A stretch of 64,000 nt of DNA from the sequence record LR756502.1, one strand, 5' to 3'. Below, one piece after another: positions 3,063 to 57,740 of this stretch; position 1 is the first letter of the stretch, and every line of letters begins with the position of its first letter. Both the position numbers and the translations under genes were made by a program. The notes beneath the pieces were generated by a model. It saw nothing but the letters and a program-made list of their open reading frames with translations. It made no database searches and was not told where the DNA came from.

Positions 3063-3619
3063 GATATCTAAAGCAATATATAATATTTGAGACACTTGAT
3101 GATAAAATCTCAACTTCCTTTATTAGTACTAAGGGTATAATAGAGGATATATATAACATATGTGATGATTTGAGAGATGATGGTCTAGATGCTCACATTT
3201 ACCCTGGTCCAAATGATAGTATAGGAATTAAAATGCTTGGTCTTGAGAGGAATGGAATGGGGGGTGGTCATGTTACTAAGATACAGGTCACATTTACTTC
3301 ACAGAATATGGATAGATTCGAGGATGGTTTTAAGGTATCAGAGATACAAGATACTTGTAATAGGTTATTGGTTTACCTAAATAGTGAGAATTTTATTTGT
3401 AGTGATGTTAGTTACATAACAAGTGCTAAATATCATGCTGCTAGAATTTCAATGAATAGGTCAACAATCACAGGAAGAGAGCAGTCCAAAAAATTTGATG
3501 ATTTTTTTAATCATTTCTTGAAACAAGACCAAAGAGCTACAAAGAAGGTCGATAGTATAAATTCGTTCGGTTCTTGTATGTATAGAGTATCTCTATCATT
3601 CGTACCTACCCTAAATTAG
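3059..3619 (+). CDS. N-tagged DLxDxGF paralog
   Basis: MRYLKQYIIFET; ICDDLRDDGLDAHI; FKVSEIQDTCNRLLVYL. Confidence 0.75.
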   Translation: MRYLKQYIIFETLDDKISTSFISTKGIIEDIYNICDDLRDDGLDAHIYPGPNDSIGIKMLGLERNGMGGGHVTKIQVTFTSQNMDRFEDGFKVSEIQDTCNRLLVYLNSENFICSDVSYITSAKYHAARISMNRSTITGREQSKKFDDFFNHFLKQDQRATKKVDSINSFGSCMYRVSLSFVPTLN

Positions 3620-4258
3620 ATTGATGAAGTTTTCTCCAGTGTATTCATTCTTCATGTGAAATCTTAAGTACCCATATCTGTGTTGACTATCTAGTTCTAT
3701 AAAATATTTTTTACTACCAATATCCAATATGAAAATATCAGGAATAGTATTAGCAGAATCCTTGAATTTTGCTTGCAACTTTTCCTCTACCATTCTCCAT
3801 AGAATATCCTTAACATAGTATTGCGCTCTTGTGCACATATAATCCAAGTGATGATATTTTTGACCAAGTTCAAACTCTCTTTGTTTAGCCAGAATAAATG
3901 TTAGTTTCTCGTCTCTTGTTTTTAGTTCAACTCTATTTTGGCTAATGCCATATCCTTTCCAATCATGATTCCAGCTAATCTCATATTGGTGTGTATTTTT
4001 TTTATCATTTCTGTGATAGAAGTAAATTATGTGTCTACCTCTATCATTCTTTGGAATCTCTTTAACAACCTCATCAATAAAATCAGACTTTTCTTTTTGG
4101 CGAATTGATGCCCTAGAACATGTCCTTAACCACAAGTCATGTAACTCATCGATAGTCCAGTCTTTGAATTTTCTTTTGAATTTTCCAAAAAAGATATCTT
4201 GACCATCTGTTGGTAAACGCCCGAAATTTTTGCCATATGTGATAAAATTAGCCTTCAT
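3611..4258 (-). CDS. hypothetical protein (internal RDEKLTFIL motif)
   Basis: Long ORF; TATATTTG element just upstream of ATG 4258. Confidence 0.7.
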   Translation of the reverse strand: MKANFITYGKNFGRLPTDGQDIFFGKFKRKFKDWTIDELHDLWLRTCSRASIRQKEKSDFIDEVVKEIPKNDRGRHIIYFYHRNDKKNTHQYEISWNHDWKGYGISQNRVELKTRDEKLTFILAKQREFELGQKYHHLDYMCTRAQYYVKDILWRMVEEKLQAKFKDSANTIPDIFILDIGSKKYFIELDSQHRYGYLRFHMKNEYTGENFINLI

Positions 4259-4310
4259 ATTACAAATATACAAATTATTTATCATATCATAAAATAAATA
4301 TATAATGTCT

Positions 4311-5060
4311 ATGAAGTATCTAAAAACTAATGAGGGTTTATTTTCAAAGGATGAAATTCCTAAGAATCTTATTGATGATATTGAAAAGGAAATTGAAAAG
4401 AACTACTCAGTGACAGTTTCTGGTATTAAAACAGCTGATATAGTACACAGTGTAACTTTTAAAACAAAGACACCTATTGGTGATGTTGATTTGGTTCTAA
4501 ATCTTGAAAAGCCATATAATAAGGGCAAACTAAGGTCCGCTATAATTGGTAATAATATAATATTTGAATTTTTTCAGGATGGTAAAAGAAGATTTGATTG
4601 GAATTACGAATTAAAACAGTTAAGAGGTGACCAGCTATCTGTTGTTTTAGTTAATATAACTAAATCTATAGATCATATTGTGAATAGAGTTACTCGGGAT
4701 AGAGATAGGAAAACAGAACATGAATCCTTCTATAATATAATAAGTGTTGATGAGATTAAGGATTTATGTGGTGATCTATATGATCTTATTGGTGAATTTA
4801 CTGTTGAGAAAGCTGGTCGGGAATATTTGGTTAAGTTTAGTAATGTTACTGGTATAGTTGCAACAACTGTAAACAATAACGCCAGAAATATCACGAGTTC
4901 AATTAGACCAAATGATAGGATGCTTAAACTTTTAATTGAATTGAACTCTCTATATAAAAGACTTCTTAATGGGTATAAACTAACCATGCTTTTTTCAATT
5001 GTACCTAATAATTTTCCAGTCTCAAAATCTTTGGTTATTACTATATCTAAAGCTAAATAA
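4311..5060 (+). CDS. N-tagged hypothetical protein
   Basis: MKYLKTNEG; AAATATATA upstream. Confidence 0.7.
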   Translation: MKYLKTNEGLFSKDEIPKNLIDDIEKEIEKNYSVTVSGIKTADIVHSVTFKTKTPIGDVDLVLNLEKPYNKGKLRSAIIGNNIIFEFFQDGKRRFDWNYELKQLRGDQLSVVLVNITKSIDHIVNRVTRDRDRKTEHESFYNIISVDEIKDLCGDLYDLIGEFTVEKAGREYLVKFSNVTGIVATTVNNNARNITSSIRPNDRMLKLLIELNSLYKRLLNGYKLTMLFSIVPNNFPVSKSLVITISKAK

Positions 5061-5073
5061 AAAATAATTATAT

Positions 5074-5319
5074 ATGGGAATAGATGAATTAAAAAGTGAG
5101 TTACCAAGAGCTATGAATGAGCAGGACTTTACCTTTATCGGTGATGGTCTTGTTATAGTTGAGGAATTTATTCGCAATTTTTTGTTAGCAAATGGATATG
5201 AATTGGTTACACTTATAATGCAGGAGATAACTGGTTCTAGAAGAACTCTAAGAATATGGATCAGTAGTAATTCAGTTGGTACTTATATAGAACTTACGGT
5301 ACATGATGCTCTAGTCTAG
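5074..5319 (+). CDS. hypothetical protein
   Basis: Tiles between neighbouring genes. Confidence 0.6.
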   Translation: MGIDELKSELPRAMNEQDFTFIGDGLVIVEEFIRNFLLANGYELVTLIMQEITGSRRTLRIWISSNSVGTYIELTVHDALV

Positions 5320-5631
5320 TATATTGTCTATTCTAATCTCTCTAATTCTTGAAGTCCTGTCTGATAGTATGTCTTGATACTCATTGTATCTTATTGGTAT
5401 AACTGCTTCTGTTGGTCTTTCTCCAATATAAACAATATATTTAATGTATATTGTTTTATCTTTATTTGGAATAGAAACAACTCTATTGTCAGTAACTTCA
5501 ACTCGATAGTCAAATCTTTTGAGTGTGTGACGCATCGCTTTCAGGAAGTGACTTCTAATCATATCAATTATTACTGAGTCATCAATTTTTTCCAACTTAG
5601 AAACAAATTGATTTGGTATTATTGAGAACAT
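5311..5631 (-). CDS. C-tagged hypothetical protein
   Basis: Ends IREIRIDNILD. Confidence 0.7.
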   Translation of the reverse strand: MFSIIPNQFVSKLEKIDDSVIIDMIRSHFLKAMRHTLKRFDYRVEVTDNRVVSIPNKDKTIYIKYIVYIGERPTEAVIPIRYNEYQDILSDRTSRIREIRIDNILD

Positions 5632-5860
5632 CTTCTATACTGTCTTGTCTTATTTGGGTTGGTGTCTTGATGAACCTATCAGTTGCATATCTACTTATGA
5701 ATCCTCTATCACTCATCAGTTCAACTATAACGACTGGGAAATTTGGATACTTTTTATAGCATCTTATGACTATGTATGCTGTGTTTGGTCTAATCGCTTT
5801 AAATTTTCGATAAGTGAATATTTCATCCCCTTCATTAAAGAATGGATACTCTCTATTCAT
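5597..5860 (-). CDS. C-tagged hypothetical protein (SH3-like FNEGDEI start)
   Basis: IRQDSIEDVLN near the C-terminus; start MNREYPF inferred. Confidence 0.6.
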   Translation of the reverse strand: MNREYPFFNEGDEIFTYRKFKAIRPNTAYIVIRCYKKYPNFPVVIVELMSDRGFISRYATDRFIKTPTQIRQDSIEDVLNNTKSICF

Positions 5861-5906
5861 ACAACTGGACTCTCTGGAAGAGTCCTTGTTAAAAATCAAC
5901 ATGAAA

Positions 5907-6125
5907 TTATTTACGTGAAAGAATTTTAGGCTTCCATCCATTCTCAGGGGATGCGGGAATGATTACTTCAATTACTCCAAGTTCTTCTAGAAAAGAGGAA
6001 ACATATTTACCAATTTCTTTACCTTGGTTTATTCTATTCATACCTTCGATGATTACAAAGTTGTATGAGTTTGGTGTTTCTAATAGGTTAGCTAGAACCT
6101 CATCGTGAATTTTTATTTTTTGCAT
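5907..6125 (-). CDS. hypothetical protein
   Basis: Start MQKIKIH inferred; TATATTTG upstream. Confidence 0.6.
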   Translation of the reverse strand: MQKIKIHDEVLANLLETPNSYNFVIIEGMNRINQGKEIGKYVSSFLEELGVIEVIIPASPENGWKPKILSRK

Positions 6126-6988: not shown

Positions 6989-7582
6989 TTAATGTATTCC
7001 AATTTTATTTAACTTGTTTAATCTCTTATCTTGTTTAGATGTGAAGTCTGGGTATATATTTTTATTATCAGAGAAGTTTTGCACCAATTCGGATATTTTA
7101 TACTCATTAGTTAATCCTGATGACATATGGATAAGCTTATTCAGAAGTACCCATTTAAAAAGACCATCTTCCTCAACAACCTTGACCTCCTTATATAGGA
7201 TATTTACCCAATTTTTATTAAATTCCCAGCTTGTCTCATCTCCTGAGAATGTGCCAGTTAGTAAAACAATTAGTCCAATAACAAATAATACCCAAAGTAA
7301 AATATTTATAGGGTTATTGACTTCGTAGACTATTGTACTACTTGGTAGTGTTTTCTGAGCGGACTTAAATGATATACATTTTATTTCACCTTCATCTTTA
7401 TATAGATATGTATATGATGTGTCATTACCAACAACAATATTATTCTGTCCAAGTACATGTATGGTATTATATCTATTATCAAAGCTACCAGCCATTATAA
7501 ATGATACTATTGTTATTATGAGTGTTATCGTCTTACCAATGTTATTTCTAATTAATTCAGAGGCGTATTTTAGGTATATCAT
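6989..7582 (-). CDS. two-TM membrane protein, C-tagged
   Basis: Two hydrophobic helices; ends KRLNKLNKIGIH; TATATTTG upstream. Confidence 0.7.
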   Translation of the reverse strand: MIYLKYASELIRNNIGKTITLIITIVSFIMAGSFDNRYNTIHVLGQNNIVVGNDTSYTYLYKDEGEIKCISFKSAQKTLPSSTIVYEVNNPINILLWVLFVIGLIVLLTGTFSGDETSWEFNKNWVNILYKEVKVVEEDGLFKWVLLNKLIHMSSGLTNEYKISELVQNFSDNKNIYPDFTSKQDKRLNKLNKIGIH

Positions 7583-7798: not shown

Positions 7799-7800
7799 TA

Positions 7801-8199: not shown

Positions 8200-8607
8200 A
8201 TGAATCTAATAAGAGTTGTTGGTGATATTGTTGATATCAGTCCTGTTTTTAATGATGTTGAGATTATATGGGTGACTGTTGAGAGGGAGATTACTGGCAT
8301 TTCATCAACCAACCCATCTATGTGGTTCATGTATAATGACTGGATATATCTAATGGTTTGTGATTATAATTTTAAAATTTTGGAGCAGTATGAGGATTGG
8401 AGTAACTTTGATGGAAGTGACTTTGATAGATATGATCCAGGAGAGAAGGAATTTAAATTCCTTTTAGGATTAAACCCAACATACTTTAAGGCATCACCTG
8501 AAGAAATATATAAAAGTGATTTAGGTCAATATTGTCAATTTGAGTTAGACTTCCTGTTTAAGTGGAGTAGGGATAGGAAGATAAGAGATATACTAGCCAA
8601 AGACTGA
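8200..8607 (+). CDS. C-tagged hypothetical protein
   Basis: Ends SRDRKIRDILAKD; start ATG 8200 inferred. Confidence 0.7.
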   Translation: MNLIRVVGDIVDISPVFNDVEIIWVTVEREITGISSTNPSMWFMYNDWIYLMVCDYNFKILEQYEDWSNFDGSDFDRYDPGEKEFKFLLGLNPTYFKASPEEIYKSDLGQYCQFELDFLFKWSRDRKIRDILAKD

Positions 8608-9171: not shown

Positions 9172-9414
9172 TTAGTCTATAATGTCATCGATAATGATAT
9201 CACGCTTATCCTCTTTTTTGATCTCCATTACCGGTTCAAATGTATGTAGTATAAATCTGCCACTATCCCAATCAAATCCATTAAATCCGGATCTTACTCG
9301 AACAGTTGGGGTGCCACCCATACTACCCTTTCTAACTACTTCAACACAAACCTCATTCTCATATTGACGAGGATCCATGTTATTTAACATCTCTCTTAAC
9401 TCCTTTACTTTCAT
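9172..9414 (-). CDS. C-tagged hypothetical protein
   Basis: Ends KRDIIIDDIID; ATGA-coupled to rnr. Confidence 0.7.
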   Translation of the reverse strand: MKVKELREMLNNMDPRQYENEVCVEVVRKGSMGGTPTVRVRSGFNGFDWDSGRFILHTFEPVMEIKKEDKRDIIIDDIID

Positions 9415-11351
9415 GATATTATAAAATCTATTGTTTTCTTATCAAGGTTTATAGACTTAACACTAACCATAATCTCATCTCCTAATCTTATAACATTGCC
9501 AGACTCATTACCAATAGCTGAATAGACTGACATATTTATTGTATACTTTTCGGTTTGTGATATATCACCAACTCTAATCATTCCCTCACATTTGTTCTCT
9601 ATTACTTCCACATATACACCCCAATCAGTTATACCTGATACTATACCCTTGAAGGATTGTCCTATCTTATCTTGTAAATATTCTGCTTGTTTATATTTTA
9701 TAGAATCTCTTTGTGCTTTTGATGCTGCTAATTCTCTTACATTTATCTTCTGACATGAATCTTCTAAAGAAGTATCGAACTTAACATTACCTTCTAACTT
9801 CTCAGTTAGTTCTCGGTGACATATACAATCAGCATATCTTCTAATTGGTGATGTAAAGTGTGTGTAAAATTGGAAGCCTAGTCCATAGTGCCCTATGTTC
9901 TTTGATGTATATATTGCCTTTGACATACATCGAGTTACCAATGTCTCAATCATATTTTCCTCGGTTTTATCTTTTATCTCATCAAGTAGATTATTCAAAG
10001 AATTCTTTACATTCTCTTTTGAGATGTCTATGTTATATCCAAAGTTAGTACAAACATTTTTAAGAGCTTCTAACTTATCATCATTTGGTGTGTCGTGTAC
10101 TCGGTATATTGAATTAGAATTATTTTTAGATAGTAGTATAGAAACCTCTTGGTTTGCTAAAAGCATAAACTCCTCAATTAGTTTATTAGCATCTCTTTGA
10201 TATTTAAAGTATACATCAAGTGGTTTACCATTTTCATCCAATTTGAATCGTACCTCAGCACCATCCATTTTCAATGAACCTGTTCTTCTGTTTCTAATAT
10301 TCTTTGCTACCTTATCTAATGTTAAAACACCTCTTGTTATATCATGAGCTTTTGTAAAGTCCATATTTAATCCAGCATCTTCAACCAGTATTCTTCCTAT
10401 TTCGGAGTTTGATTTGCCAACAGATTCAATAACTGCTTGTGCTTGCTCATATGAAAATCTATGGTTAGAGTGTATAACAGTTCTTCCAAACCATCTATCT
10501 AAAACATCTCCACTCTCATTCATTTTAAGAATAACTGAGTAACATAATTTATCTTCATGTGGTCGTAGTGAACAAACTCCGTTAGATAGTCTTTTTGGTA
10601 ACATTGGAACACATCTATCAACTAGATAAACAGATGTAGATCTATTGATTGCTTCCTGATCAATTAGTGATCCTGGTTTAACAAAGTGTGTAACGTCCGC
10701 GATATGAACACCAACTTCAATATATCCGTCTTTTACTTCAATAGATAATGCATCATCAAAATCCTGAGCGTCTACCGGATCTATAGTGAATGTTAGAACA
10801 TTCCTCATATCTCTTCTCTTTGAGACTTCTTCCTCAGAAACCTCAAATGGTATGAGTTCCGCCTCTGCCTCAACTCCTTTAGGGAATTCAATTGGTAGTC
10901 CATATTCATACATGATGGAATTCATTTCGGTGTTATTATTTCCAATCTCACCAAGTACTTGAATTATTTCACCAGATGGTGATTTTGTCCCTGGTTTCCA
11001 CCTCTTGAAGTTTATAACAACTTTCTGTTTATCTTTAGCTCCGCAAGTTTTTTCTTCTGGTATGAAGAAATCTACTGGGCATTTTGAGTTGTCTGGTATT
11101 ACAAATGTAATATCATTATTTCTATGAACTGTTCCAACAAATTGTGTTTTGAATCTAGATAATACTTCTTCGACTTTTCCTTCTTTTTTTCCTTCTCTAA
11201 TTAATATAGAGATCCTTACTGTATCTAGATGTAAGGCGTTTAATGTGTTTTTTCTAAAGACAAATACTTCATTCGTATCATCTATTTTAACGTAAGAGCT
11301 TCCATTCATTAAAAACTGGATTTGTCCTACTTTTTCATTTTCATTTATCAT
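9411..11351 (-). CDS. rnr: ribonuclease R (RNB family)
   Basis: CSD/OB N-terminus, TIDPVDAQDFDDA catalytic motif, HFTSPIRRYAD, C-terminal S1 domain. Confidence 0.95.
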   Translation of the reverse strand: MINENEKVGQIQFLMNGSSYVKIDDTNEVFVFRKNTLNALHLDTVRISILIREGKKEGKVEEVLSRFKTQFVGTVHRNNDITFVIPDNSKCPVDFFIPEEKTCGAKDKQKVVINFKRWKPGTKSPSGEIIQVLGEIGNNNTEMNSIMYEYGLPIEFPKGVEAEAELIPFEVSEEEVSKRRDMRNVLTFTIDPVDAQDFDDALSIEVKDGYIEVGVHIADVTHFVKPGSLIDQEAINRSTSVYLVDRCVPMLPKRLSNGVCSLRPHEDKLCYSVILKMNESGDVLDRWFGRTVIHSNHRFSYEQAQAVIESVGKSNSEIGRILVEDAGLNMDFTKAHDITRGVLTLDKVAKNIRNRRTGSLKMDGAEVRFKLDENGKPLDVYFKYQRDANKLIEEFMLLANQEVSILLSKNNSNSIYRVHDTPNDDKLEALKNVCTNFGYNIDISKENVKNSLNNLLDEIKDKTEENMIETLVTRCMSKAIYTSKNIGHYGLGFQFYTHFTSPIRRYADCICHRELTEKLEGNVKFDTSLEDSCQKINVRELAASKAQRDSIKYKQAEYLQDKIGQSFKGIVSGITDWGVYVEVIENKCEGMIRVGDISQTEKYTINMSVYSAIGNESGNVIRLGDEIMVSVKSINLDKKTIDFIIS

Positions 11352-13102: not shown

Positions 13103-13285
13103 ATGAGCGAAATGTCATCAATGTCACCAATGCAAGAAGCACCAGACCCAAGATGGGTTAATGAGAGATACCTTTTGGATATTATCAAAAAACAATTAGG
13201 TATAACAGATGAAGATATGAGAAATATCTCAATTGTAAAATCTAAGGTTAGAGAAGCTAATATTGATAAAGTTTTAGATAAATAA
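13103..13285 (+). CDS. small C-tagged protein
   Basis: Ends VREANIDKVLDK; start MSEMSS inferred within the longer track ORF. Confidence 0.6.
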   Translation: MSEMSSMSPMQEAPDPRWVNERYLLDIIKKQLGITDEDMRNISIVKSKVREANIDKVLDK

Positions 13286-14851: not shown

Positions 14852-15225
14852 TGAGTAAAGAAAAAGTAAAATGGATGGACAAACCAGAGGATCATAATTA
14901 TCCTGCGGCTGAGTCCTATTTGTCTTTGTTATTTGATAAAGATGATGTTAATCAATTAATATCTAGGTTAGATAAAGCTGATATATCTGAGTTCAAGGCT
15001 AAAGATATCTTCAGAGCATCCAAACTATCACTTTTAGGTATAAGTAATTCTCACGTTGATAAGAATATCGAGAAGATAGAAAATGAAAAAGAATTATCGC
15101 CAATTTTATTGGTTCGGGATTCAAAGACAAGAACTGTTATTATCGCAGATGGTTACCACCGAATGTGTGCTGTCTATCACTATGATGAGGATTGTTTGAT
15201 CCCATGTAAAATTGTTAGTATATGA
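14851..15225 (+). CDS. ParB/Srx-like domain protein
   Basis: PILLVRD...IIADGYHR motif. Confidence 0.7.
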   Translation: MSKEKVKWMDKPEDHNYPAAESYLSLLFDKDDVNQLISRLDKADISEFKAKDIFRASKLSLLGISNSHVDKNIEKIENEKELSPILLVRDSKTRTVIIADGYHRMCAVYHYDEDCLIPCKIVSI

Positions 15226-15509
15226 TAATTAAAACAAAGTTCAAATGTAAATCAAATTGTAAGACTTCACCGAGAATGGGTACATCTGCTACGTTTTCAG
15301 ATAAATTTATTGAGGGTAAATACTATGACGTTGAATATGAGACATGGTCATTTGATGATGGATATAGGTTAAATAATGGTTGGAAAAGCTATTTAGTGGT
15401 TGATGAGAATGGTTTAAAAGAAAAAATGTCAAGAGTAACGTTTAGAGCTATTTTCTATACAGAGATTGATGATATTAGAAATGAAACTATTAATGATATT
15501 CTAAAGTAA
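15222..15509 (+). CDS. C-tagged hypothetical protein
   Basis: Ends IRNETINDILK. Confidence 0.7.
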   Translation: MIIKTKFKCKSNCKTSPRMGTSATFSDKFIEGKYYDVEYETWSFDDGYRLNNGWKSYLVVDENGLKEKMSRVTFRAIFYTEIDDIRNETINDILK

Positions 15510-16942: not shown

Positions 16943-17197
16943 ATGTTTAAATTCAAAGTTGGTGATAGAGTTGTAAATATAAGAGTTGGTGTGTATAAGT
17001 ATGAGCCTATTGAAGTTATTTTGCTTGAAGAAACAGAAGAAGTGACCTTTTATAGTCATAGATATTATATAAAATATCTAAATGTTTATAATGTTCAAAA
17101 TACTAATATGACTCAGTGGGTTCATGAAGATGATTTAGACTTTGATAAATCATATTATAGGGATACCATAATAGATGAAATAATTAATCTCCAATAA
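16943..17197 (+). CDS. C-tagged protein with SH3-like FKVGDRV start
   Basis: Ends YRDTIIDEIINLQ. Confidence 0.7.
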   Translation: MFKFKVGDRVVNIRVGVYKYEPIEVILLEETEEVTFYSHRYYIKYLNVYNVQNTNMTQWVHEDDLDFDKSYYRDTIIDEIINLQ

Positions 17198-20848: not shown

Positions 20849-21268
20849 TCATGATATTATATTTTCTATTTTATTATTACGAACTATGTCTTGTGGAATT
20901 TTTCCTTTGTTAAAATCACCTATTCTTGAATATAATATTCTTCTACTTTCATAGTACTCCTCTATCAAAGAGTTGAATGCATTTATATAGTCTGGAAGTG
21001 ACTTGTCGTTTTTACAAGTATATTTAATTATAATATGATCGTCTTGTCGAAAGACGAGTTTTGTTGAGGCCAATAATATATTTATATCGATATAATGAAG
21101 TCCATCAACATCAACTAAATACATTAAACCACTTTCAGATCCATATCCCTTAAATCTTACAGGATATTCTCTTTCAATCTCACGATAGTCTCTTCTAGTT
21201 GGGTCTTTATACAAAGACTTCAATTTATCTCCTATAAAATTATCTATTTCTTCAAATGTCATATACAT
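20849..21268 (-). CDS. C-tagged hypothetical protein
   Basis: Ends VRNNKIENIIS. Confidence 0.7.
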   Translation of the reverse strand: MYMTFEEIDNFIGDKLKSLYKDPTRRDYREIEREYPVRFKGYGSESGLMYLVDVDGLHYIDINILLASTKLVFRQDDHIIIKYTCKNDKSLPDYINAFNSLIEEYYESRRILYSRIGDFNKGKIPQDIVRNNKIENIIS

Positions 21269-22274: not shown

Positions 22275-22505
22275 TTAAATTATTTCTGATATTACTAAAT
22301 CTCTTTTCGTTGCTATAAATTCATTTTCAGTGAGTTCCACTCTGGTGAATGATGCCCACATTACCCATTTGTTTTTTATTTCTAATTGTGCTGGATTAAA
22401 TAGGGTAGACTCCCTCTCATCAGTTGCCTCGTATAGATGATTATTTAATAACCCAATATCTGGTCTTGATAATCCATCATACCTATATAATATTTTCTTC
22501 ATCAC
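22275..22505 (-). CDS. C-tagged hypothetical protein
   Basis: Ends KRDLVISEII; TATATTTG upstream heads the run. Confidence 0.65.
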   Translation of the reverse strand: MMKKILYRYDGLSRPDIGLLNNHLYEATDERESTLFNPAQLEIKNKWVMWASFTRVELTENEFIATKRDLVISEII

Positions 22506-23577: not shown

Positions 23578-23868
23578 ATGAAAGAGAAGGCCATCGTAAA
23601 GAAAACAAGTGAAATATTGGATGTTGAAGAGCATTGGTCAGTAAAAATGATGAGTGTCACAATTGAACTACCGGATGAATTGAAAGATGTATTTAAAGAA
23701 CCGATTGATGTTTTCGGTCATAAGATTGAGTATAAAGATAAATATACTAAATCCAACAAGGAAGGGGATCACTATATTTTATCGGATGGTAAAGAATATA
23801 TGGGTCATGATTTAATTGTTGGTATTGATAATATTCGTGACTATAAGGTAAATAAACTAATAGACTAG
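23578..23868 (+). CDS. C-tagged hypothetical protein
   Basis: Ends IRDYKVNKLID. Confidence 0.7.
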   Translation: MKEKAIVKKTSEILDVEEHWSVKMMSVTIELPDELKDVFKEPIDVFGHKIEYKDKYTKSNKEGDHYILSDGKEYMGHDLIVGIDNIRDYKVNKLID

Positions 23869-27830: not shown

Positions 27831-28426
27831 TGGGTTATATTAGATTTTTTCCAAACAAAAAAAGTTGATTTATCTTTCTGTACTTCGATATAACCTTCTT
27901 CCCTATACTGAGAACTCACAAGCTTGCAATTGAATATGTGGCCTTTGTATTTTGAGCTAAGACCTGGATACGATTGTGATTTATTATCATATCCAATATC
28001 CTTCTTTTCTTCCAATTGATATTTCCCAACATCTATTCCCAATTCTTCTTTTATTCCCCTAATTGCTGAAACTAAAGGATTCTCACCAGATTTCATCTTT
28101 TCAGATACAGATGCTAACATCTTTCTTTTCCTTACCCTACCATCATTGAATACTTGTCTATCTTCAGTAAGAAGATATTTATTTCCATCTTCATTATAAA
28201 ATATATTAATGCCAACAAATTCAATGTATCTAACTAGTTGACCATCCTCCTCAACTATTATACATTCACTATTTGTTAATTCATCCAAAAGATTCTCAAC
28301 TGATTTGGCTTCTCCTTTACCCCATGTCTCATGTGGTATTCCATATTCTCCTAATTTTGTAATTAGATCCTCAGTTGTTTTTATTTCATTTGAACTGAAG
28401 TATTCATATAACTTTAGATGTTTCAT
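27827..28426 (-). CDS. Nudix-fold protein, N-tagged
   Basis: MKHLKLYEYF; degenerate Nudix box GENPLVSAIRGIKEELG. Confidence 0.65.
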   Translation of the reverse strand: MKHLKLYEYFSSNEIKTTEDLITKLGEYGIPHETWGKGEAKSVENLLDELTNSECIIVEEDGQLVRYIEFVGINIFYNEDGNKYLLTEDRQVFNDGRVRKRKMLASVSEKMKSGENPLVSAIRGIKEELGIDVGKYQLEEKKDIGYDNKSQSYPGLSSKYKGHIFNCKLVSSQYREEGYIEVQKDKSTFFVWKKSNITQ

Positions 28427-29146
28427 ATTTTGTATATATTAAACTTTCTATTATTTTTTGATAAAAAGTGTGTGCGTGAATCTTTTAGTGAATATAAAAA
28501 GACAATAGAAAGTAATCTCCTTGGTGTTGATTACTTATATGCTGGTGATGTTATTAAGTCACTTGATAGAAAGGTATATTCTGAAATTAAGTCTAGTCCA
28601 CTTACCTCACCAACATTTATAATTAATTGTATTAAGCAGATATATAAGGATAGCTTTGATAGTATAAAACAAAAGTCAATTGATTTGGTAATACCAACTA
28701 CCACAGGCGAACAACTTGATGTAGTTTATCTGAAATCAAAAATAGATTCTTTTTTTGGATCAAGTAAATATATATTCTCTTCAAAAGAAACTAATAAATT
28801 TATTGGCATAAATAAACCTCTTGATAAAACACGAGGACTACCAGACTACTTTTATCCTATGAAATCCAAATTTGTTTCTGGATCAGATATATACTTCTCA
28901 CCAGAGGTTGAGGAGGAAGATGGTATATATTTTATGTATGTTACTAATAATGCTTTTCAGAGTATGGTATATGTTTTACAAAACATGGAATATGAAATGG
29001 TGGAAAATGATCCGGAGAATGGTGTTATATCTTGGACACATAGTATTACATATCAATTATATGATTGTAAATTTTCTTCTGTTAGGGTTGTAATAAAAAA
29101 TGTATCTAAAATAAGAGATGAAAAAATAAATCAGATATTGTCATGA
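28418..29146 (+). CDS. C-tagged hypothetical protein (true start uncertain, probably downstream)
   Basis: Ends IRDEKINQILS. Confidence 0.65.
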   Translation: MFHILYILNFLLFFDKKCVRESFSEYKKTIESNLLGVDYLYAGDVIKSLDRKVYSEIKSSPLTSPTFIINCIKQIYKDSFDSIKQKSIDLVIPTTTGEQLDVVYLKSKIDSFFGSSKYIFSSKETNKFIGINKPLDKTRGLPDYFYPMKSKFVSGSDIYFSPEVEEEDGIYFMYVTNNAFQSMVYVLQNMEYEMVENDPENGVISWTHSITYQLYDCKFSSVRVVIKNVSKIRDEKINQILS

Positions 29147-29535
29147 TGAAGATTGATATATCAAATGTTGGTAATGGGCATGAATTAAGTGACTATGAGA
29201 TGAATGTTCTCAAGACATCACATTTACGTAGTCGTCTTGATGATATTAACTATAATATGAAAAGTGAATTTAATTACCTTATAGTATCTATGAGTGTGTA
29301 TAATGCTATTGAGTGTAATCCTAGATTTAAACCATCATATACTGAGAAGGTATTTGATGGTCCACACTATATTGGTATGTTTGGAACATTTGAATGTTAT
29401 GTTGATTTATTACTACCATCAAACATGGTTTTAATGCAATATGATAAGCGGATTGCTAGGGATAAAAAAATTGATACTATTCTCAACGATGTTGATGTTG
29501 TAACTGAAGTTGAAGTTACTATTAACGGATTATAG
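29143..29535 (+). CDS. hypothetical protein with near-terminal RDKKIDTIL motif
   Basis: ATGA-coupled to the upstream gene. Confidence 0.7.
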   Translation: MMKIDISNVGNGHELSDYEMNVLKTSHLRSRLDDINYNMKSEFNYLIVSMSVYNAIECNPRFKPSYTEKVFDGPHYIGMFGTFECYVDLLLPSNMVLMQYDKRIARDKKIDTILNDVDVVTEVEVTINGL

Positions 29536-46919: not shown

Positions 46920-46925
46920 TAAATT

Positions 46926-47339
46926 ATGAAATATATTAACACATATAAGTTGTTTGAGAATAGTGAATCATCCGATGAGACATATAAAATAGTATCCGAG
47001 CAACTGTTTTATGAATTAGATGATAAATTTAGATTTGGACCAGGTGTGTTCTTTCCATTGAAAGTTCGTTTAGAGTATAGAAATGATAGTTATGATTTGA
47101 CTATTGCTTTAGCTGGTGGTTGGATTAGAAGAATGTCCGATGATGATATTAAGTGGTTGCGTGATAAGGTTTATGATATAAATAAAGAATATGAATCCAA
47201 TGGAAACTTCTATGCTGCTTTTATGGGTGATGGTGGTGGAAATGGTAGAATCGTATTTGAAATGATGAATGAAGATTTTCCGAGGAGTTCTATGGATTAT
47301 ATGAATCATCCTATTGGTCCTTATCCTGATCGAGGATAA
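46926..47339 (+). CDS. N-tagged hypothetical protein
   Basis: MKYINTYKLFENSES. Confidence 0.7.
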   Translation: MKYINTYKLFENSESSDETYKIVSEQLFYELDDKFRFGPGVFFPLKVRLEYRNDSYDLTIALAGGWIRRMSDDDIKWLRDKVYDINKEYESNGNFYAAFMGDGGGNGRIVFEMMNEDFPRSSMDYMNHPIGPYPDRG

Positions 47340-47526
47340 TATCCAATTTTTTATTTCTTATCTCTGAAATTATTTTAATATAGTTTTCCTCAAATATACT
47401 TTCTATATTAACAAATGATATATTTGCCTTTATATCTTCCACAAACTCTCTTGAGATTCCTATATTAATTCCCTTATATAAAAGGAGGCCCTCCTTATCA
47501 AAGGTTACATTTTCCTGCCAACTCAT
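47311..47526 (-). CDS. C-tagged hypothetical protein
   Basis: IRNKKLDIILD; ATGA-coupled to uvsW. Confidence 0.65.
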   Translation of the reverse strand: MSWQENVTFDKEGLLLYKGINIGISREFVEDIKANISFVNIESIFEENYIKIISEIRNKKLDIILDQDKDQ

Positions 47527-49133: not shown

Positions 49134-49242
49134 CTCATTATTATATATAAAATAGTCTTTATGTTTTATTATGTGGTTTTTATGTGGTTTTTTACAGAGG
49201 GACATGATGAACAAAGATATATAATAAAAAATAACACTAATT

Positions 49243-49650: not shown

Positions 49651-50091
49651 TTATTTTCCTAGTACTTCATCTATCTTATTATTTCTTATTTCAATATGAT
49701 CCTTTTGGAAGTTCCCTCTTATGACGTATCTTGTTGTTGATGATGTTGGGTAAGAATGATGATGTGACTCCTCTAACCAAACATTATAGAATATAAAGTA
49801 GTCATTCTCTGTCATCTTTAACACACCATCAATAAGATCTGATATATTATCAAATTTCATAGTACTACATGTTAAAGCCTTAGATTCAAATTCAAATGTT
49901 GGGGAATCTGTTATGAAGTAAATTCTATGTTCCACTTTTGAAAGAATGTAGTATATCTCATCCTCGGTGAGGATTCCCGTTTCTGATGGTGAAAAGGATT
50001 GGATTTGATTTAATAATGAGTGCTTTCTAGATACTTCTAGAATAAGTCTTTGTATTCTTTCCTCTTTGGAAAGAGCCATTAGGTTTATCAT
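49651..50091 (-). CDS. C-tagged hypothetical protein downstream of clpP
   Basis: Ends IRNNKIDEVLGK. Confidence 0.7.
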   Translation of the reverse strand: MINLMALSKEERIQRLILEVSRKHSLLNQIQSFSPSETGILTEDEIYYILSKVEHRIYFITDSPTFEFESKALTCSTMKFDNISDLIDGVLKMTENDYFIFYNVWLEESHHHSYPTSSTTRYVIRGNFQKDHIEIRNNKIDEVLGK

Positions 50092-50094: not shown

Positions 50095-50763
50095 TTACTT
50101 TCTTTTTATTATGACCTCATCAATCATTCCATATTTTCTAGCTTCTTCAGCATTCATCCAATAATCTCTATCGCTGTCCTTATGTACTCTATCATATGCT
50201 TGTCCGGTCTTTTCAGATATTAGTTCATATAGTTCTTTCTTAAGTGAGTTTATCTCCCTAGCTTCTATTTCCATATCTGATGCTTGTTGAAATCCAGCAT
50301 ATCCGAGTGGTTGATGAATCATTGTTCTGCTTCTTTTAAGCGCCTTCCTTTTACCTTTAGTACCGGAACAAAGTAAAACCGCCGCCATAGATGCTGCTAA
50401 CCCTGTATTTATTGTAACTATGTCTGGCTTGACGAAGTCCATTATATCGAGTAATCCAAGTCCAGAATATACTGATCCACCGGGTGAATCTATGTATATT
50501 TTAATATCTTTTTCTGGATCAGCATTTTCTAGATAAAGAAGTTGTGCCTTTATTATGTTACATATCTCTGAGTCCATTTCAGTTGCTAGAAATATTATTC
50601 TACTATCAAGTAGTTTTGAGTAAACATCAACCACTACACCATCTACTGAGTCGTCTATTATATGTAGTGTGTTATTTTGTTTTTGTATTTTTCTAAAATA
50701 CCCATCAACATAAGTACTACTTATGCCTTGTTTATTTGCAAATTTTCTAAAGTCATTACTCAT
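50095..50763 (-). CDS. clpP: ATP-dependent Clp protease proteolytic subunit
   Basis: YIDSPGGSVYSG, GLAASMAAVLL, MIHQPLG, DRDYWMNAEEA..YGMID. Confidence 0.95.
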   Translation of the reverse strand: MSNDFRKFANKQGISSTYVDGYFRKIQKQNNTLHIIDDSVDGVVVDVYSKLLDSRIIFLATEMDSEICNIIKAQLLYLENADPEKDIKIYIDSPGGSVYSGLGLLDIMDFVKPDIVTINTGLAASMAAVLLCSGTKGKRKALKRSRTMIHQPLGYAGFQQASDMEIEAREINSLKKELYELISEKTGQAYDRVHKDSDRDYWMNAEEARKYGMIDEVIIKRK

Positions 50764-50865
50764 AGATATAATTTCTATTTTTAGTTTTATTGTAATTAAC
50801 TTATAAAGTTTAATCAATAATGTCGGTATTGGAAATTAATATATAATAAAAAATAATATTAAAGC

Positions 50866-52467: not shown

Positions 52468-53195
52468 TATAATTGAGTAAATTTATTTACACTAAGACAA
52501 ACAAACTCAGCATTGCTGTGTAAGAATCTGTAGTTATTATGGAAGTGACCATAATACCAACCTTTTAGGTTATTCTTACCATTCAACATTAATATATTTG
52601 CCATTTCAGTAATTCTATCTCTTTCTAGTCTTAGGTCACTTAGTAGCTCTGCATCATTTTTAGCATACCCATAAACTAAGCTATTTAATGTTTTTGGTTC
52701 ACAAAAATTTGGAGCTGTGTGAGTTATTACTCTATCGATTTGCTCGAACTCTTGTAACTTATCAACATCTAAGTGGAATACCTCATCAACCCACCAAGAA
52801 GCTCTTAAACTCATCATTCTTGGTATTCTATCAATACTAACCGCACCACCAACAAATAGAATTTTTTCAAAGTCTATTTCAATAACAGTGTAGTCTGGTA
52901 TAAATGTAATTCTATTTAGAATTTGCTTTTCATTCATAAAATTATCTGCCTTAAACCAATCAGGCATATCATGGTTTCCTCTTATAATATATAAGTCACA
53001 CTCATAAGTGTTCAATATCTCATTTAGTTTTGTTAACTTTTCAATTTCAACTTCATGTGCATCAAACCCAACTCCAAAATCACCAACTTGTATATAGGCA
53101 ATATTTTTCTCATCATAGTGAACAACGTGGTTCGCTATGATGCTCCAATATCCGTGGATATCTCCTAATAAATATTTCTTATTGTATATTTTCAC
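52467..53195 (-). CDS. calcineurin-like metallophosphoesterase
   Basis: GDIHG, GDFG, RGNHD, THTAP, GHFH. Confidence 0.9.
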   Translation of the reverse strand: MKIYNKKYLLGDIHGYWSIIANHVVHYDEKNIAYIQVGDFGVGFDAHEVEIEKLTKLNEILNTYECDLYIIRGNHDMPDWFKADNFMNEKQILNRITFIPDYTVIEIDFEKILFVGGAVSIDRIPRMMSLRASWWVDEVFHLDVDKLQEFEQIDRVITHTAPNFCEPKTLNSLVYGYAKNDAELLSDLRLERDRITEMANILMLNGKNNLKGWYYGHFHNNYRFLHSNAEFVCLSVNKFTQL

Positions 53196-53571
53196 TTAAA
53201 ATTTGACTTATTTTACTATCTCTTATCTTTTGAGAGTTATTATTATACCATATAATTTCTTTTGTTGGTAACCATTCTTTAAAATATGACTTACTTAACA
53301 AATCTTTATGTGAGTAAGACTCACCAGATGATGCAACTACCGCCACCACTCTTACCTTGGTTAAGGTGCCTGCCTCTCCTATCTCTTCTATCTCAATTGT
53401 AAATTTTCTATAATTGGCCTCAGCCTCTATTATACCAAATCTACCAGTTCCACTAGATAGTATCTTTTTTGTTTTCTGCTTTATTCTCCTACTATTTACT
53501 TTATAAGATACTAAATATCCAGCTATAACACCGATAGTAAGAACTAATAATATTGTTAAATATCCTATCAT
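53179..53571 (-). CDS. N-terminal TM protein, C-tagged
   Basis: Hydrophobic N-terminus; IRDSKISQILS. Confidence 0.7.
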   Translation of the reverse strand: MIGYLTILLVLTIGVIAGYLVSYKVNSRRIKQKTKKILSSGTGRFGIIEAEANYRKFTIEIEEIGEAGTLTKVRVVAVVASSGESYSHKDLLSKSYFKEWLPTKEIIWYNNNSQKIRDSKISQILSENIQ

Positions 53572-53942
53572 TTTCTATCTCCTCCTAAAACATCATCAAT
53601 TTTTTGATCTCTCTTTTCTTGTCTAGTATCATTTGATCCAAACTCCCACTTATCTTTAAATTCCTGTATGAATGATACACCTTCTTCTTTTGTTTTAACC
53701 TTACGACCAAATGTTGATATATTATCATATGACGACATACAAGATAATCTACAACAACAAATGTGTGGTGTCAAATTAAATGAGGACCCATCAGGTACAC
53801 TTGATATAACATAGTATGTCCATGTTACTTTCTCTGTATCAAATATACCATAAACTGAGAAATCAACATCTATACTATTTTTTGGATCTTCTAATTTAAA
53901 TTCCTTTAAGTTTGTTTTGTATAAAAATCTTCCTTTTTTCAT
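53568..53942 (-). CDS. C-tagged hypothetical protein
   Basis: KRDQKIDDVLG; TATATTTG upstream. Confidence 0.7.
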   Translation of the reverse strand: MKKGRFLYKTNLKEFKLEDPKNSIDVDFSVYGIFDTEKVTWTYYVISSVPDGSSFNLTPHICCCRLSCMSSYDNISTFGRKVKTKEEGVSFIQEFKDKWEFGSNDTRQEKRDQKIDDVLGGDRK

Positions 53943-56102: not shown

Positions 56103-56132
56103 AAAAAACCCACTCAAATGAGTGGGTTTTTT
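56103..56132. terminator. bidirectional intrinsic terminator
   Basis: AAAAAACCCACTCA-AA-TGAGTGGGTTTTTT. Confidence 0.85.
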
Positions 56133-56642
56133 TTATTTTCCAAAACTCTTAAAAGTTCTTGTTCTTCTATAACTTTTTGATTCAGATGTTAATTCTTCTT
56201 CTCCTCTTCTCTGATATCTTTCCTCATCTTCTCTTTCACTGAAATCTTTTTCATCATCCAAAACAGGAGTCTCATTATCAAAATCTGGAGCCTCATCTGA
56301 TATATCATTACCACCTTCAGAACTTAAATATTCAACAACCTCATCAGCTGTTTTAAATTTCTTTCTATCAACGTGATACATTTCTGTTTCAGAGAAAAAG
56401 TTTATTACCTTTCCATTATACTCAACTGAATTATCAACTACTTCAGCTCCTAATTTGTCAGCTAACTCAGCTAACATTCTATTGCCTTTATATTGGTGAC
56501 CTTCCTCCTCGGAATAATCTGATTCATCAGATATTTCACCCTGAACTTCGTCTTTAACTTCGTCTTGAATTTCACCCTCTGGGAAATCAAAATCCTCGTT
56601 GATTTTTTTAATATATTGGTTGTATTTCTTAATAATTGCCAT
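56133..56642 (-). CDS. N-tagged acidic protein
   Basis: MAIIKKYNQYIKKINE; ends RTRTFKSFGK. Confidence 0.75.
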   Translation of the reverse strand: MAIIKKYNQYIKKINEDFDFPEGEIQDEVKDEVQGEISDESDYSEEEGHQYKGNRMLAELADKLGAEVVDNSVEYNGKVINFFSETEMYHVDRKKFKTADEVVEYLSSEGGNDISDEAPDFDNETPVLDDEKDFSEREDEERYQRRGEEELTSESKSYRRTRTFKSFGK

Positions 56643-56687
56643 GTTTAATACTTTCTTTTTGTATAGATATATATTAAAATTAAATAT

Positions 56688-57167
56688 CTATTTTTCTTTC
56701 AGTTCTTCACATATATAGTCTAAAAAGTTATCAAGTTCATATTCTATACCACCACAAAATTCAAAAACATCATATGTTGAATTTTTATAAACCTTTTCAA
56801 AGTCGGCTACTGTATCACCATTTGGATATACTATTATTTTCCCTTCTAATATTCCCTCTGATATTTCTCCATTCTCCCACTCAATTGCGGGGACATATAG
56901 TGTACCTATGTGATGGATCTCATCACCATAGTCTTCTGTTAATCTATATTCAAACTTGAAATATCCTGAGTCATCCTCAAATACTTGATCATTTTCTAAA
57001 TATTTAATCTTGTTATGTATCTCATCCTCTTTATGTGATGAGTGTGAGTCTAGAAATTCCTTCTCTAATGAGGTTAGAGAGTCAACTCCATATTTTGAAA
57101 TTTTATCCAAAATATCGTCTTGTCTTTCTTGGGATCCATATCCCTCATATCTCATTAGATGTTTCAT
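56688..57167 (-). CDS. N-tagged protein with DUF6576-like segment
   Basis: MKHLMRYEGY; DDILDKISKYGVDSLTSLEKEFLDSHS. Confidence 0.75.
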   Translation of the reverse strand: MKHLMRYEGYGSQERQDDILDKISKYGVDSLTSLEKEFLDSHSSHKEDEIHNKIKYLENDQVFEDDSGYFKFEYRLTEDYGDEIHHIGTLYVPAIEWENGEISEGILEGKIIVYPNGDTVADFEKVYKNSTYDVFEFCGGIEYELDNFLDYICEELKEK

Positions 57168-57169
57168 AT

Positions 57170-57535
57170 TTAACTATTTATAATTCCATTGGTTGTTCCA
57201 ATATATGGCCCAACATTTATCATCTTTTCCTTTATCGATTTATAGACTTCATTTTGATATCCACTGGTTTGGTATATACAGACATATGAATTGTTAATTT
57301 GGTCAATTTCAAAATCTTCGAATTCTATATCATTTAAAATGTTATTTATTTTTCTTTCCCTTTCATATGATTTTTTTGAATCAGTGTAATTATCAACAAA
57401 GCAGAATATCATACCACCACTACCATCTTTTGGATGTGATAAAACCTTTTGAAAGTCTAATCCAAAATAGAACTTCATTGTCACTCCACTATCTTTATCT
57501 ATATGCTCATCAACCAATACCATCGAATATATCAT
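57170..57535 (-). CDS. hypothetical protein (internal RERKINNIL motif)
   Basis: Coupled run. Confidence 0.65.
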   Translation of the reverse strand: MIYSMVLVDEHIDKDSGVTMKFYFGLDFQKVLSHPKDGSGGMIFCFVDNYTDSKKSYERERKINNILNDIEFEDFEIDQINNSYVCIYQTSGYQNEVYKSIKEKMINVGPYIGTTNGIINS

Positions 57536-57740
57536 CTATTTTTTTATCCCTAGACTCTGACTTATATAATTCTAGTTGTCTTTCATTAAAAAGTTCATCA
57601 TTCTCAAATCTGTATTTATAGTCAATAAATGCTGAATTTGACATTTTTAGTAATTTATAAGCACCTTTACCTATCTTATTATCTGCTAACCTAGCATCTA
57701 AGTATAGAATATAGTATGGGTATATCTTATCTAATTTCAT
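57510..57740 (-). CDS. C-tagged hypothetical protein
   Basis: Ends SRDKKIDDIFDGIG; start MKLDKIY inferred. Confidence 0.65.
   Translation of the reverse strand: MKLDKIYPYYILYLDARLADNKIGKGAYKLLKMSNSAFIDYKYRFENDELFNERQLELYKSESRDKKIDDIFDGIG

Follow-up and report, generated by a model that had tools for sequence, protein, structure and literature searches.

The analysed window, a 64,000-nucleotide stretch of LR756502.1, is part of a 642,428-bp Mahaphage-clade phage genome with a predicted Bacteroidetes host. Within it, 17 genes encode otherwise unrelated small proteins that carry the same short peptide 0–8 residues before the stop codon, and three more carry a copy further inside. These genes, and the clpP gene adjacent to one of them, are listed below; peptides are written to the last residue before the stop codon, with any tail after the hyphen.

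5311..5631 (-), 106-aa gene ending REIRIDNIL-D (tag at 5317-5343).
5597..5941 (-), 114-aa gene, RQDSIEDVL followed by an 8-aa tail (tag 5624-5650); a weak match, but the orthologue in a 635-kb relative ends REDKIKEIL.
6989..7582 (-), 197-aa gene ending RLNKLNKIGIH (tag 6998-7024), the L-G-I type variant.
8200..8607 (+), 135-aa gene ending RDRKIRDIL-AKD (tag 8569-8595); a TAnnTTTG match lies in its upstream gap.
9172..9414 (-), 80-aa gene ending RDIIIDDII-D (tag 9178-9204).
13103..13285 (+), 60-aa gene ending REANIDKVL-DK (tag 13250-13276); orthologues in the second genome and in IMG/VR keep the tag.
15222..15509 (+), 95-aa gene ending RNETINDIL-K (tag 15477-15503); its 2 metagenomic homologues end RNEKIDEILK.
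16943..17197 (+), 84-aa gene ending RDTIIDEII-NLQ (tag 17159-17185).
20849..21268 (-), 139-aa gene ending RNNKIENII-S (tag 20855-20881).
22275..22505 (-), 75-aa gene ending RDLVISEII (tag 22278-22304, no tail).
23578..23868 (+), 96-aa gene ending RDYKVNKLI-D (tag 23836-23862).
28418..29146 (+), 242-aa gene ending RDEKINQIL-S (tag 29114-29140).
47311..47526 (-), 71-aa gene ending RNKKLDIIL-DQDKDQ (tag 47332-47358).
49651..50091 (-), 146-aa gene ending RNNKIDEVL-GK (tag 49660-49686), immediately downstream of clpP; no homologue other than itself was found among 5.8 billion proteins.
53179..53571 (-), 130-aa gene with an N-terminal hydrophobic (TM-like) stretch read from the sequence, ending RDSKISQIL-SENIQ (tag 53197-53223).
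53568..53942 (-), 124-aa gene ending RDQKIDDVL-GGDRK (tag 53586-53612), member of a 15-member family.
57510..57788 (-), 92-aa gene ending RDKKIDDIF-DGIG (tag 57525-57551).
29143..29535 (+), 130-aa gene with the motif RDKKIDTIL at residue 106, followed by a 16-aa tail (about 29458-29484).
57170..57535 (-), 121-aa gene with an internal copy RERKINNIL at residue 59 (about 57335-57361).
3611..4285 (-), 224-aa gene with a weak internal copy RDEKLTFIL at residue 124 (about 3890-3916).
50095..50817 (-), a true ClpP (PF00574, 2e-69), one of three ClpP paralogues in the genome, given for context.

A first-pass annotation of the window had listed these 17 terminal peptides and three internal copies, and proposed a tag on about 20 small proteins. 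The observation held: all 17 peptides and the three internal copies are present in the genes named, although the coordinates given there are gene start or end coordinates rather than those of the motif. The annotation missed the variant that ends ...K-L-x-x-L-G-I-COOH, and it underestimated the scale, because the tag is present in about 15% of all genes (about 145 of 975), so that about one protein in seven of this phage ends in the same short helix (R-D-x-K-I-D-x-I-L).

To test whether the motif frequency matches that of shuffled C-termini, one of the conditions that had been set in advance for rejecting the tag, we derived a regular expression from the listed peptides. In the last 20 aa of the 103 called window genes 15 hits were observed, against 0.03–0.05 in 2000 shuffles, and 2 further hits were internal. 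This test is circular, because the expression came from the list. With a PSSM (threshold ≥12 bits), 131 C-terminal and 28 internal hits were observed genome-wide, against 0.15 and 0.75 in shuffles, so the C-terminal position is not absolute. The profile search was extended to relatives, as the annotation had suggested, and a second genome of 635 kb yielded 91 strict and about 134 PSSM hits. The PSSM was trained on tagged proteins of both genomes, and the counts for these two share the circularity; only the IMG/VR and cellular loci were not used to build it. Tagged ORFs were present in 69 of 111 IMG/VR loci, but in 0 of 993 ORFs from 120 cellular loci found with the same DNA pattern.

Selection acts at the protein level. 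Codon positions 1 and 2 are conserved, whereas position 3 and the Arg codon family (AGA/AGG/CGT) vary. The carriers are unrelated to one another: once the tag was trimmed, 98/105 tagged proteins were BLAST singletons. Only 5/145 (each a different family) and 4/133 tagged proteins hit Pfam, among them a riboflavin kinase, BtpA and a zinc ribbon, and only DUF6011 recurs in both genomes. PHROGs gave 13 single-member families, and NCBIfam gave no shared model. A single paralogous family or known domain is therefore not what the carriers share.

The tag is far more conserved than the proteins that bear it. In 42 orthologue pairs the body was 36.7% identical and the tag 62% (p=1.7e-10). R0 was conserved in 100%, L8 in 83% and K3 in 71%, while x2, x5 and x6 were at body level, and the IL-x and LGI forms interconvert between orthologues. 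The conservation profile peaks at 100 degrees per residue, placing the conserved residues on one helical face. In the family of gene 53568..53942 the last 30 aa are the most conserved part. In its AlphaFold model the body has pLDDT 85–93, the hinge (residues 104–107) is below 50 and the tag helix (106–118) is about 52, consistent with a terminal helix that is not packed. Only this confident model supports the absence of packing, and a second model failed (pLDDT 39). The G/P/S/T/N/Q fraction at positions -16 to -5 was 0.256, against 0.292 in bodies, indicating that flexible-linker residues are not enriched before the tag, unlike in SspB tethers or microcompartment encapsulation peptides.

The annotation had also claimed that no ORF carries both this tag and a second, N-terminal one (MKHLKxYKIFE, or MKHLKxYK[IL]FE), and had proposed a Fisher test for it. 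Exclusivity holds genome-wide: 0 genes with both tags were found in either genome, against 16.8 and 11.8 expected (p=8e-9 and 3e-6). C-C and N-N neighbours are enriched, and C-N neighbours are depleted (16 adjacent pairs against 33.8 expected). The phage-type motif TTAATATATA precedes 33/38 and 29/31 N-tag genes (87% and 94%), but 2/33 and 2/31 C-tag genes (6% and 6%). The host-type motif TAnnTTTG alone precedes 24% and 45% of C-tag genes, against about 15% of other genes. The phage-type class contains the gp23-like capsid protein, gp20-like portal, terminase, ribonucleotide reductase and gyrase, and the host-type class contains Hsp70, GluRS and NAD-salvage genes. More than half of the C-tag operon leaders show neither motif, so "early" is inferred from promoter motifs only, and rests on a minority of leaders plus the near absence of the phage-type motif.

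The reading offered by the annotation was a shared amphipathic docking helix or degron that addresses early proteins to one hub, such as a protease/adaptor, an oligomeric scaffold or a phage compartment; this interpretation is partly supported. The data bear out a protein-level, C-terminal amphipathic helix shared by unrelated small proteins, exclusive with the N-tag and associated with host-type rather than phage-type promoters, and the docking reading fits the conservation, the one-face periodicity and the unpacked model. That there is one hub, what it is, or that the tag is a degron, is not shown.

We favour, with a probability of about 0.6, the following explanation. The tag is a short linear motif, with the consensus h-x-x-h-R-[DNE]-x-K-[IL]-[NDS]-x-[ILV]-L followed by 0–3 polar residues, or ...K-L-x-x-L-G-[IL]-COOH, that forms a roughly three-turn amphipathic α-helix at the C-terminus of about 15% of the proteins of this megaphage and its relatives. 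The carriers are small (median about 110 aa), mostly soluble, fast-evolving, mostly orphan proteins, encoded in tightly packed arrays that are not driven by the phage-type motif that precedes capsid, portal, terminase and replication genes, and that lean towards host-type Bacteroidetes promoters. In this view the helix does not pack on its own protein, but docks through the face made of R0, K3, I4, I7 and L8 into a groove of one conserved receptor, and so acts as an address label for non-late phage proteins. The analysis itself establishes the motif, its position and scale, protein-level selection, modularity, conservation above that of the bodies, helical periodicity, clade distribution, exclusivity with the N-tag and the promoter-class difference, whereas binding in trans and a single receptor are our inference; no receptor was identified, binding was not computed, and neither the receptor nor the outcome of binding is shown.

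The leading candidate for the receptor, which we hold only tentatively, is the phage's own ClpC-ClpP machine. The ClpC-like unfoldase encoded by the genome lacks the usual N-terminal adaptor domain (Clp_N), but keeps the M-domain and the VGF ClpP-docking loop, and there are three ClpP paralogues. If so, the tag would serve either as a degron that clears first-wave proteins or as a tether. The annotation pointed to the clpP gene beside a tagged gene, but nothing links it or the unfoldase to the tag, and the Clp genes show no informative promoter class or linkage to it. Short C-terminal peptides read by a protease machine are known from AAA+ proteases (the SspB XB peptide, ssrA, MuA). The tag does not fit classical ClpX/ClpA-type degrons (ssrA, MuA), which need a defined, mostly apolar extreme C-terminus at a fixed distance from the free carboxylate: here the tail is 0–10 variable residues (mode 1), mostly K/D/N/G/E, and only the LGI form ends apolar. 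No ClpX was sought. Nor does it fit SspB, whose tethering peptide is separated from the body by a long disordered linker, because no linker enrichment was found and the AlphaFold hinge is only about 4 residues. The SspB peptide binds the N-domain of its partner unfoldase, the domain that the phage protein lacks, and such binding was not assayed here.

Among the alternatives, a self-association or pairing tag survives best, although we consider it unlikely. The helices could bind one another and gather the first-wave proteins into homo- or hetero-oligomers, one assembly or a condensate, or could pair with the N-terminal MKHLKxYKIFE helix of the other class, as docking domains do in polyketide synthases. 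The helix is short and amphipathic with self-complementary charges (R0, K3 against D1, D5), and strict exclusivity is expected for two halves of a pair. However, about 2.5–3 turns is short for a stable coiled coil, and an invariant Arg in the middle of the apolar face suits a specific groove better than a zipper. N- and C-tag genes are not neighbours and belong to different promoter classes, so their products need not be present at the same time.

Slightly less likely is an intramolecular or protective cap, with no common receptor, that stabilises small proteins or hides their C-termini from host tail-specific or Clp proteases. The absence of a linker, a typical C-cap residue after the helix (K/D/N/G, or Gly in the LGI form) and the possibility that small orphan proteins need help to be stable speak in its favour. 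An invariant Arg and one-face conservation across about 150 unrelated bodies, including different known folds, are hard to explain by packing on each body, and AlphaFold leaves the helix unpacked in the one good model. A cap would not need to exclude N-tagged and phage-promoter-class proteins.

A virion-packaging signal is improbable. The phage has an HK97/T4-type head module (gp20-like portal, gp23-like capsid protein), C-terminal loading peptides of encapsulin cargo bind HK97-fold shells, and scaffolding proteins have C-terminal coat-binding helices. C-tag genes, however, almost never carry the promoter motif shared by head and tail genes, and about 145 cargo species would be unprecedented. 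The T4 capsid targeting sequence (MKTYQEFIAE of the internal proteins, cleaved by the gp21 prohead protease) is likewise a roughly 10-residue terminal peptide that addresses otherwise unrelated phage proteins to one destination, but it is N-terminal, expressed late and cleaved after (L/I)-x-E, features that fit the N-tag of this phage and not the C-tag, which also has a different sequence. Encapsulin cargo-loading peptides and microcompartment encapsulation peptides are grafted on unrelated cargo and bound by one shell protein. Encapsulin peptides have a G-S-L type motif and are extended, whereas the R-[DNE]-x-K-[IL]-x-x-[IL]-L consensus has helical periodicity. An amphipathic terminal helix is shared with microcompartment cargo, although the sequence motifs differ; no BMC shell gene (PF00936/PF03319) appeared in the partial Pfam lists, which do not cover the whole genome. 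Within that coverage no shell gene is linked to the tag, its promoter class differs from that of capsid genes, and the scale here is two orders of magnitude larger.

A membrane-targeting helix of the MinD/FtsA type is very unlikely: although the tag is a short amphipathic helix at the extreme C-terminus, its net charge is about zero, D/N/E is conserved at position 1 and N/D/S/E at position 5, there are only 3–4 apolar residues and no aromatic ones, and residue identities are strict, whereas membrane-targeting helices are cationic and loosely conserved. A DNA- or RNA-level repeat at gene ends (recombination handle, terminator, translation signal for the next gene or T4 PeSL-type cassette), descent of one paralogous family or stop-codon recoding, suggested by AT-rich codons and by the next gene starting within 10 nt of 61% of tagged genes, is largely refuted by the varying synonymous sites, the unrelated bodies, tags ending genes convergent with their neighbour (for example 8200-8607), normal stop-codon usage and a next in-frame stop after a median of 5 codons, as for other genes.

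The poxvirus ankyrin/PRANC (F-box-like) families offer a further comparison, because many viral proteins with variable bodies share a short C-terminal helical motif that plugs them into one hub. In poxviruses the bodies are one repeat family and the hub (host Skp1) is known, whereas here the bodies are unrelated, the hub has not been identified and the host is a bacterium. A speculative extension, which we consider improbable but which the data do not rule out, is that the roughly 145 C-tagged proteins are a phage-encoded library of adaptors, in which each variable body binds a different host target and the common helix plugs it into the phage's own N-domain-less ClpC-ClpP protease. If true, the phage would degrade chosen host proteins to order, a bacterial-virus counterpart of viral F-box/PRANC families, and, together with the T4-like N-terminal capsid tag, about a quarter of the proteome would carry a terminal address label.

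The window is identical to positions 62,001-126,000 of LR756502.1, an unannotated 642,428-bp uncultured phage genome, and one of the four largest genomes of Al-Shayeb et al. (2020), who place it in the Mahaphage clade and predict a Bacteroidetes host (PMC7162821). Phage proteins with type IX secretion sorting domains (CHU_C, Por_Secre_tail), encoded at LR756502.1 415688-418381 and by one gene behind a host-type promoter, independently support a Bacteroidota host. The whole record was compared with its only near relative in the phage collection, LR745206.1 (634,780 bp, genome 2). Genes were called mechanically as the longest ATG ORFs with at most 45 nt of overlap, giving 975 and 942 genes at 92-93% coding.

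The first-pass annotation described a C-terminal helix motif on about 20 small proteins, and this observation holds. All 17 listed peptides are present and end 0-8 residues before a stop codon. To test whether the motif occurs no more often than in shuffled C-termini, an outcome that would have counted against it, a regular expression made from the 17 peptides was applied to the window. It matched the last 20 residues of 15 of 103 genes, against 0.03-0.05 in shuffles. Genome-wide, the strict expression found 105 C-terminal and 26 internal hits, and a PSSM at 12 bits found 131 C-terminal and 28 internal hits, against 0.15 and 0.75 in shuffled proteins. The window test is circular, and the PSSM was also trained on the tagged proteins of the two megaphage genomes, so that their counts share the circularity; only the IMG/VR and cellular loci are independent of it. 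At 10 bits, 145 genes (15%) carry the tag. The distance to the stop codon is 1 residue in 42 of 105 genes and 0-3 residues in 85 of 105. Internal copies (LR756502.1 397265-397861, 612691-613035, 256301-257968 and about 25 others) are about 35-fold above chance; some proteins have one internal and one terminal copy, as if two tagged modules had fused, and eight have tails of 12-17 residues.

The PSSM revealed a second form that the first-pass annotation had not separated, R-D-x-K-L-x-x-L-G-[IL], ending exactly at the carboxyl terminus. About 30 genes have it, and RLNKLNKIGIH in the window is close to it. Orthologues switch between the ...IL-x and ...LGI forms, so the two are equivalent.

The tag is a protein signal and not a DNA signal. 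In the 17 window copies, codon positions 1 and 2 are conserved while position 3 varies: Arg is written AGA, AGG or CGT, Ile is ATA, ATT or ATC, and Leu is CTA, TTA, TTG or CTC. Stop-codon usage is ordinary, and the next in-frame stop follows after a median of 5 codons, as for other genes, so that readthrough or recoding is not an explanation.

To analyze whether the carriers are related, the tag was trimmed and the remaining bodies were compared. Of 105 carriers, 98 had no BLASTP match (E<1e-4) to any other protein of the genome. Only 5 of 145 tagged proteins hit Pfam in genome 1 (LR756502.1) and 4 of 133 in genome 2, mostly different families, with only DUF6011 recurring (Flavokinase, BtpA, DUF6011, DUF2158, a zinc ribbon, UVR and others). 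Which tagged protein gives the riboflavin kinase hit was not identified, so the tag has not been shown to lie beyond the end of that domain. PHROGs gave 13 families with one member each, and NCBIfam gave no shared model and no known C-terminal sorting-signal model. The homologue search with the tagged gene next to clpP (49651-50091) returned only the protein itself. A profile of the tag was not run against the 1.84-billion-protein library, where a motif of about 23 bits is estimated to be unable to reach significance. Carriers are small (median 110-114 aa, range 50-622), and 94% have no TM-like segment. The following genes lie among the tagged genes of the window:
9411-11351 (-), an RNase II/R-type exoribonuclease (RNB, 2e-104)
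29808-32084 (-), a weak sub-threshold DHH match (25.1 bits, curated cut-off 28.1)
43387-44901 (+), a gp5-like baseplate hub (Phage_base_V)
47523-49283 (-), a DEAD/ResIII helicase

The tag is under stronger constraint than the bodies. Tagged genes turn over fast: 44 of 145 have a reciprocal best hit in genome 2, against 391 of 830 untagged genes. Where an orthologue exists, however, the tag is kept; 39 pairs score above threshold in both genomes, and the discordant pairs show degenerate tags. In 42 pairs, body identity is 36.7% and tag identity 62% (Wilcoxon p=1.7e-10). R0 is identical in 100% of pairs, L8 in 83% and K3 in 71%, whereas positions x2, x5 and x6 sit at body level (36-40%). The conservation profile has its strongest periodicity at 100 degrees per residue. 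On a helical wheel R0, K3, I4, I7, L8 and position -4 share one face, while x2 and x6 point away.

To analyze the helix in the context of a carrier, we modelled the product of gene 53568-53942, which has 14 metagenomic homologues. In their alignment the last roughly 30 residues (KDKWEyGsNDTRQEKRDqKIdDvL) are the most invariant part. AlphaFold2 with that alignment predicted a confident body (pLDDT 85-93), followed by a hinge at residues 104-107 with pLDDT below 50 and a terminal helix at 106-118 with pLDDT about 52. A segment that is conserved but not packed is what one expects of a motif that binds something else. This rests on one model only, since a second prediction (gene 15222-15509, 3-sequence alignment) reached pLDDT 39 and is unusable. 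A Foldseek search of the good model against the PDB found no fold match (best E 0.7).

To test whether the tag extends beyond the two genomes, an exact DNA pattern for the LGI-stop form was searched, and it found 111 IMG/VR stretches, many on contigs of 280-483 kb. Sixty-nine of them contain tagged ORFs, 280 in all (218 + 62), with up to 16 of 40 ORFs in one 15-kb locus. Thirty-five per cent of their ORFs match the two megaphages at 40-60% identity, so this is one broad clade. A contig labelled as a giant-virus MAG (IMGVR_UViG_GVMAG-S-404869-56_000001) carries 4 C-tagged ORFs of 10, and 6 ORFs matching the megaphages, so it is probably megaphage DNA binned wrongly. The same pattern in the genomes of 185,579 species returned 120 single, taxonomically scattered matches, and none of the 993 ORFs in those loci is tagged. 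The tag is therefore viral and not a copy of a common cellular C-terminus.

The N-terminal tag of this phage is M-K-[HY]-[LI]-K-x-[YF]-x-x-F-E at the very N-terminus. It occurs on 113 and 83 genes in the two genomes and includes a 32-member paralogous family. In the form M-K-[HY]-[LI]-K-x-[YF]-K-[IL]-F-E it resembles the T4 capsid targeting sequence (MKTYQEFIAE) and ends in an (I/L)-x-E motif like T4 prohead-protease sites. It may mark capsid cargo. Window genes of this class include 259-552, 549-1091, 3059-3619, 11836-12219, 13451-13846, 15543-15980, 17261-19748, 24786-25487, 27827-28426, 32078-32560, 46263-47339 and 56688-57167, among others. The exclusivity of the two tags had been singled out beforehand for a Fisher test. 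No gene has both, against 16.8 and 11.8 expected (p=8e-9 and 3e-6). Genes of the same class cluster, with 44 C-C neighbours against 21 expected and 46 N-N neighbours against 13, and C-N neighbours are depleted (16 against 34).

The first-pass annotation also remarked that several C-tagged genes follow a host-type promoter. When TAnnTTTG was scored anywhere within 80 nt upstream, coding sequence included, no difference between the classes was observed. We then analyzed true non-coding gaps of at least 35 nt and operon leaders. Two motifs stood out: TTAATATATA, about 21 nt before the start codon, and the Bacteroidetes -7 box TAnnTTTG. The former, in the form TTAATATATA(A), lies in 190 of 410 non-coding gaps genome-wide (in the window, for example, upstream of 34696, 36525, 41593, 43387, 44939, 62784(-) and 63251(-)); it looks like a phage-specific promoter that serves both structural and replication genes and is distinct from the host-type box. 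TTAATATATA precedes 33/38 and 29/31 N-tag genes (87-94%), but only 2/33 and 2/31 C-tag genes, and 46% of other genes. TAnnTTTG alone precedes 8/33 and 14/31 C-tag genes, against about 15% of others. The only k-mers enriched at C-tag operon leaders are pieces of TATATTTGTA.

Genes behind TTAATATATA include the gp23-like capsid protein, gp20-like portal, T4-type terminase, lysozyme, the window's baseplate genes, ribonucleotide reductase, gyrase and DnaB. Genes behind the host-type box include Hsp70, a GluRS-type tRNA synthetase, NAD salvage (NAMPT/NAPRTase), PRPP synthetase, IMPDH, an RNase P protein and MgtC. The T4-type head module lies at LR756502.1 222545-229167 and comprises a gp20-like portal, a 699-aa protein with a weak sub-threshold N-terminal match to the T4 prohead protease family S77, and a gp23-like major capsid protein whose match starts at residue 88, which may indicate a propeptide. 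The two tags therefore mark two expression classes: the N-tag goes with phage-directed (middle or late) transcription, and the C-tag with the rest, partly host-type. This supports the earlier remark about promoters, although more than half of the C-tag leaders show neither motif. The promoter data argue against a capsid-loading role for the C-tag; that role fits the N-tag.

The evidence points to a docking helix read in trans by one conserved partner, a reading to which we give a probability of about 0.6. It is supported by (i) one-face conservation with an invariant Arg; (ii) grafting onto unrelated folds; (iii) retention through rapid turnover of the bodies; and (iv) an unpacked state in the model. 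These features come from the analysis itself, whereas binding in trans and the existence of a single partner are inferred from them. The earlier interpretation, a shared docking helix or degron that addresses early proteins to one hub, is partly supported.

A phage-owned protease is a reasonable candidate for the receptor. The genome encodes a 707-aa ClpC-like double-ring unfoldase and three ClpP paralogues, one of them at window 50095-50817 (2e-69):
LR756502.1 440544-442667, the ClpC-like unfoldase, without the N-terminal Clp_N domain, which is replaced by about 47 charged residues, but with the UVR M-domain and a VGF ClpP-docking loop
LR756502.1 58607-59281, ClpP paralogue
LR756502.1 112095-112763 (window 50095-50763), ClpP paralogue
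LR756502.1 364437-365003, ClpP paralogue
LR756502.1 320919-321134, a 71-aa C-tagged protein with a UVR-like motif similar to the M-domain of the phage ClpC-like protein (BLASTP 2e-07)

A tagged protein of genome 2 also hits the Pfam UVR family. However, there is no linkage between the Clp genes and the tag, the promoter class of the clpC and clpP genes was uninformative, and the tag does not fit classical degron rules. Within the docking reading, the Clp version is considered less likely than not.

Among the alternatives, self-association of the helices or pairing with the N-tag is unlikely but survives best, closely followed by a protective or structural cap. Virion packaging is improbable, in keeping with the promoter data. 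A membrane-targeting helix was rejected, as was a resemblance to SAP/HeH or half-HTH motifs, whose register does not match on inspection. An artefact at the nucleic-acid level or through paralogy is the least likely and was also rejected, given the variable third codon positions and the unrelated bodies.

Terminal address peptides are a known kind of device, as in the T4 capsid targeting sequence, encapsulin and microcompartment peptides, and protease tethers. What differs here is the motif, its unidentified reader and its scale, none of which was found in Pfam, PHROGs or NCBIfam, and full-text literature searches returned no description of the motif. To our knowledge, terminal address peptides used at this scale have not been described for any phage. 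Most genes of huge phages are orphans with no clue to their function. A label shared by about 15% of them, plus a second exclusive label on another 12%, sorts a quarter of this dark proteome into two classes with different promoters, and reduces about 150 unknowns to one tractable question, namely what reads the helix. The 9-12-residue peptide would also be a ready handle for pull-downs and for engineering. If the reader is a protease, a scaffold or a compartment, it would be a central organiser of megaphage infection.
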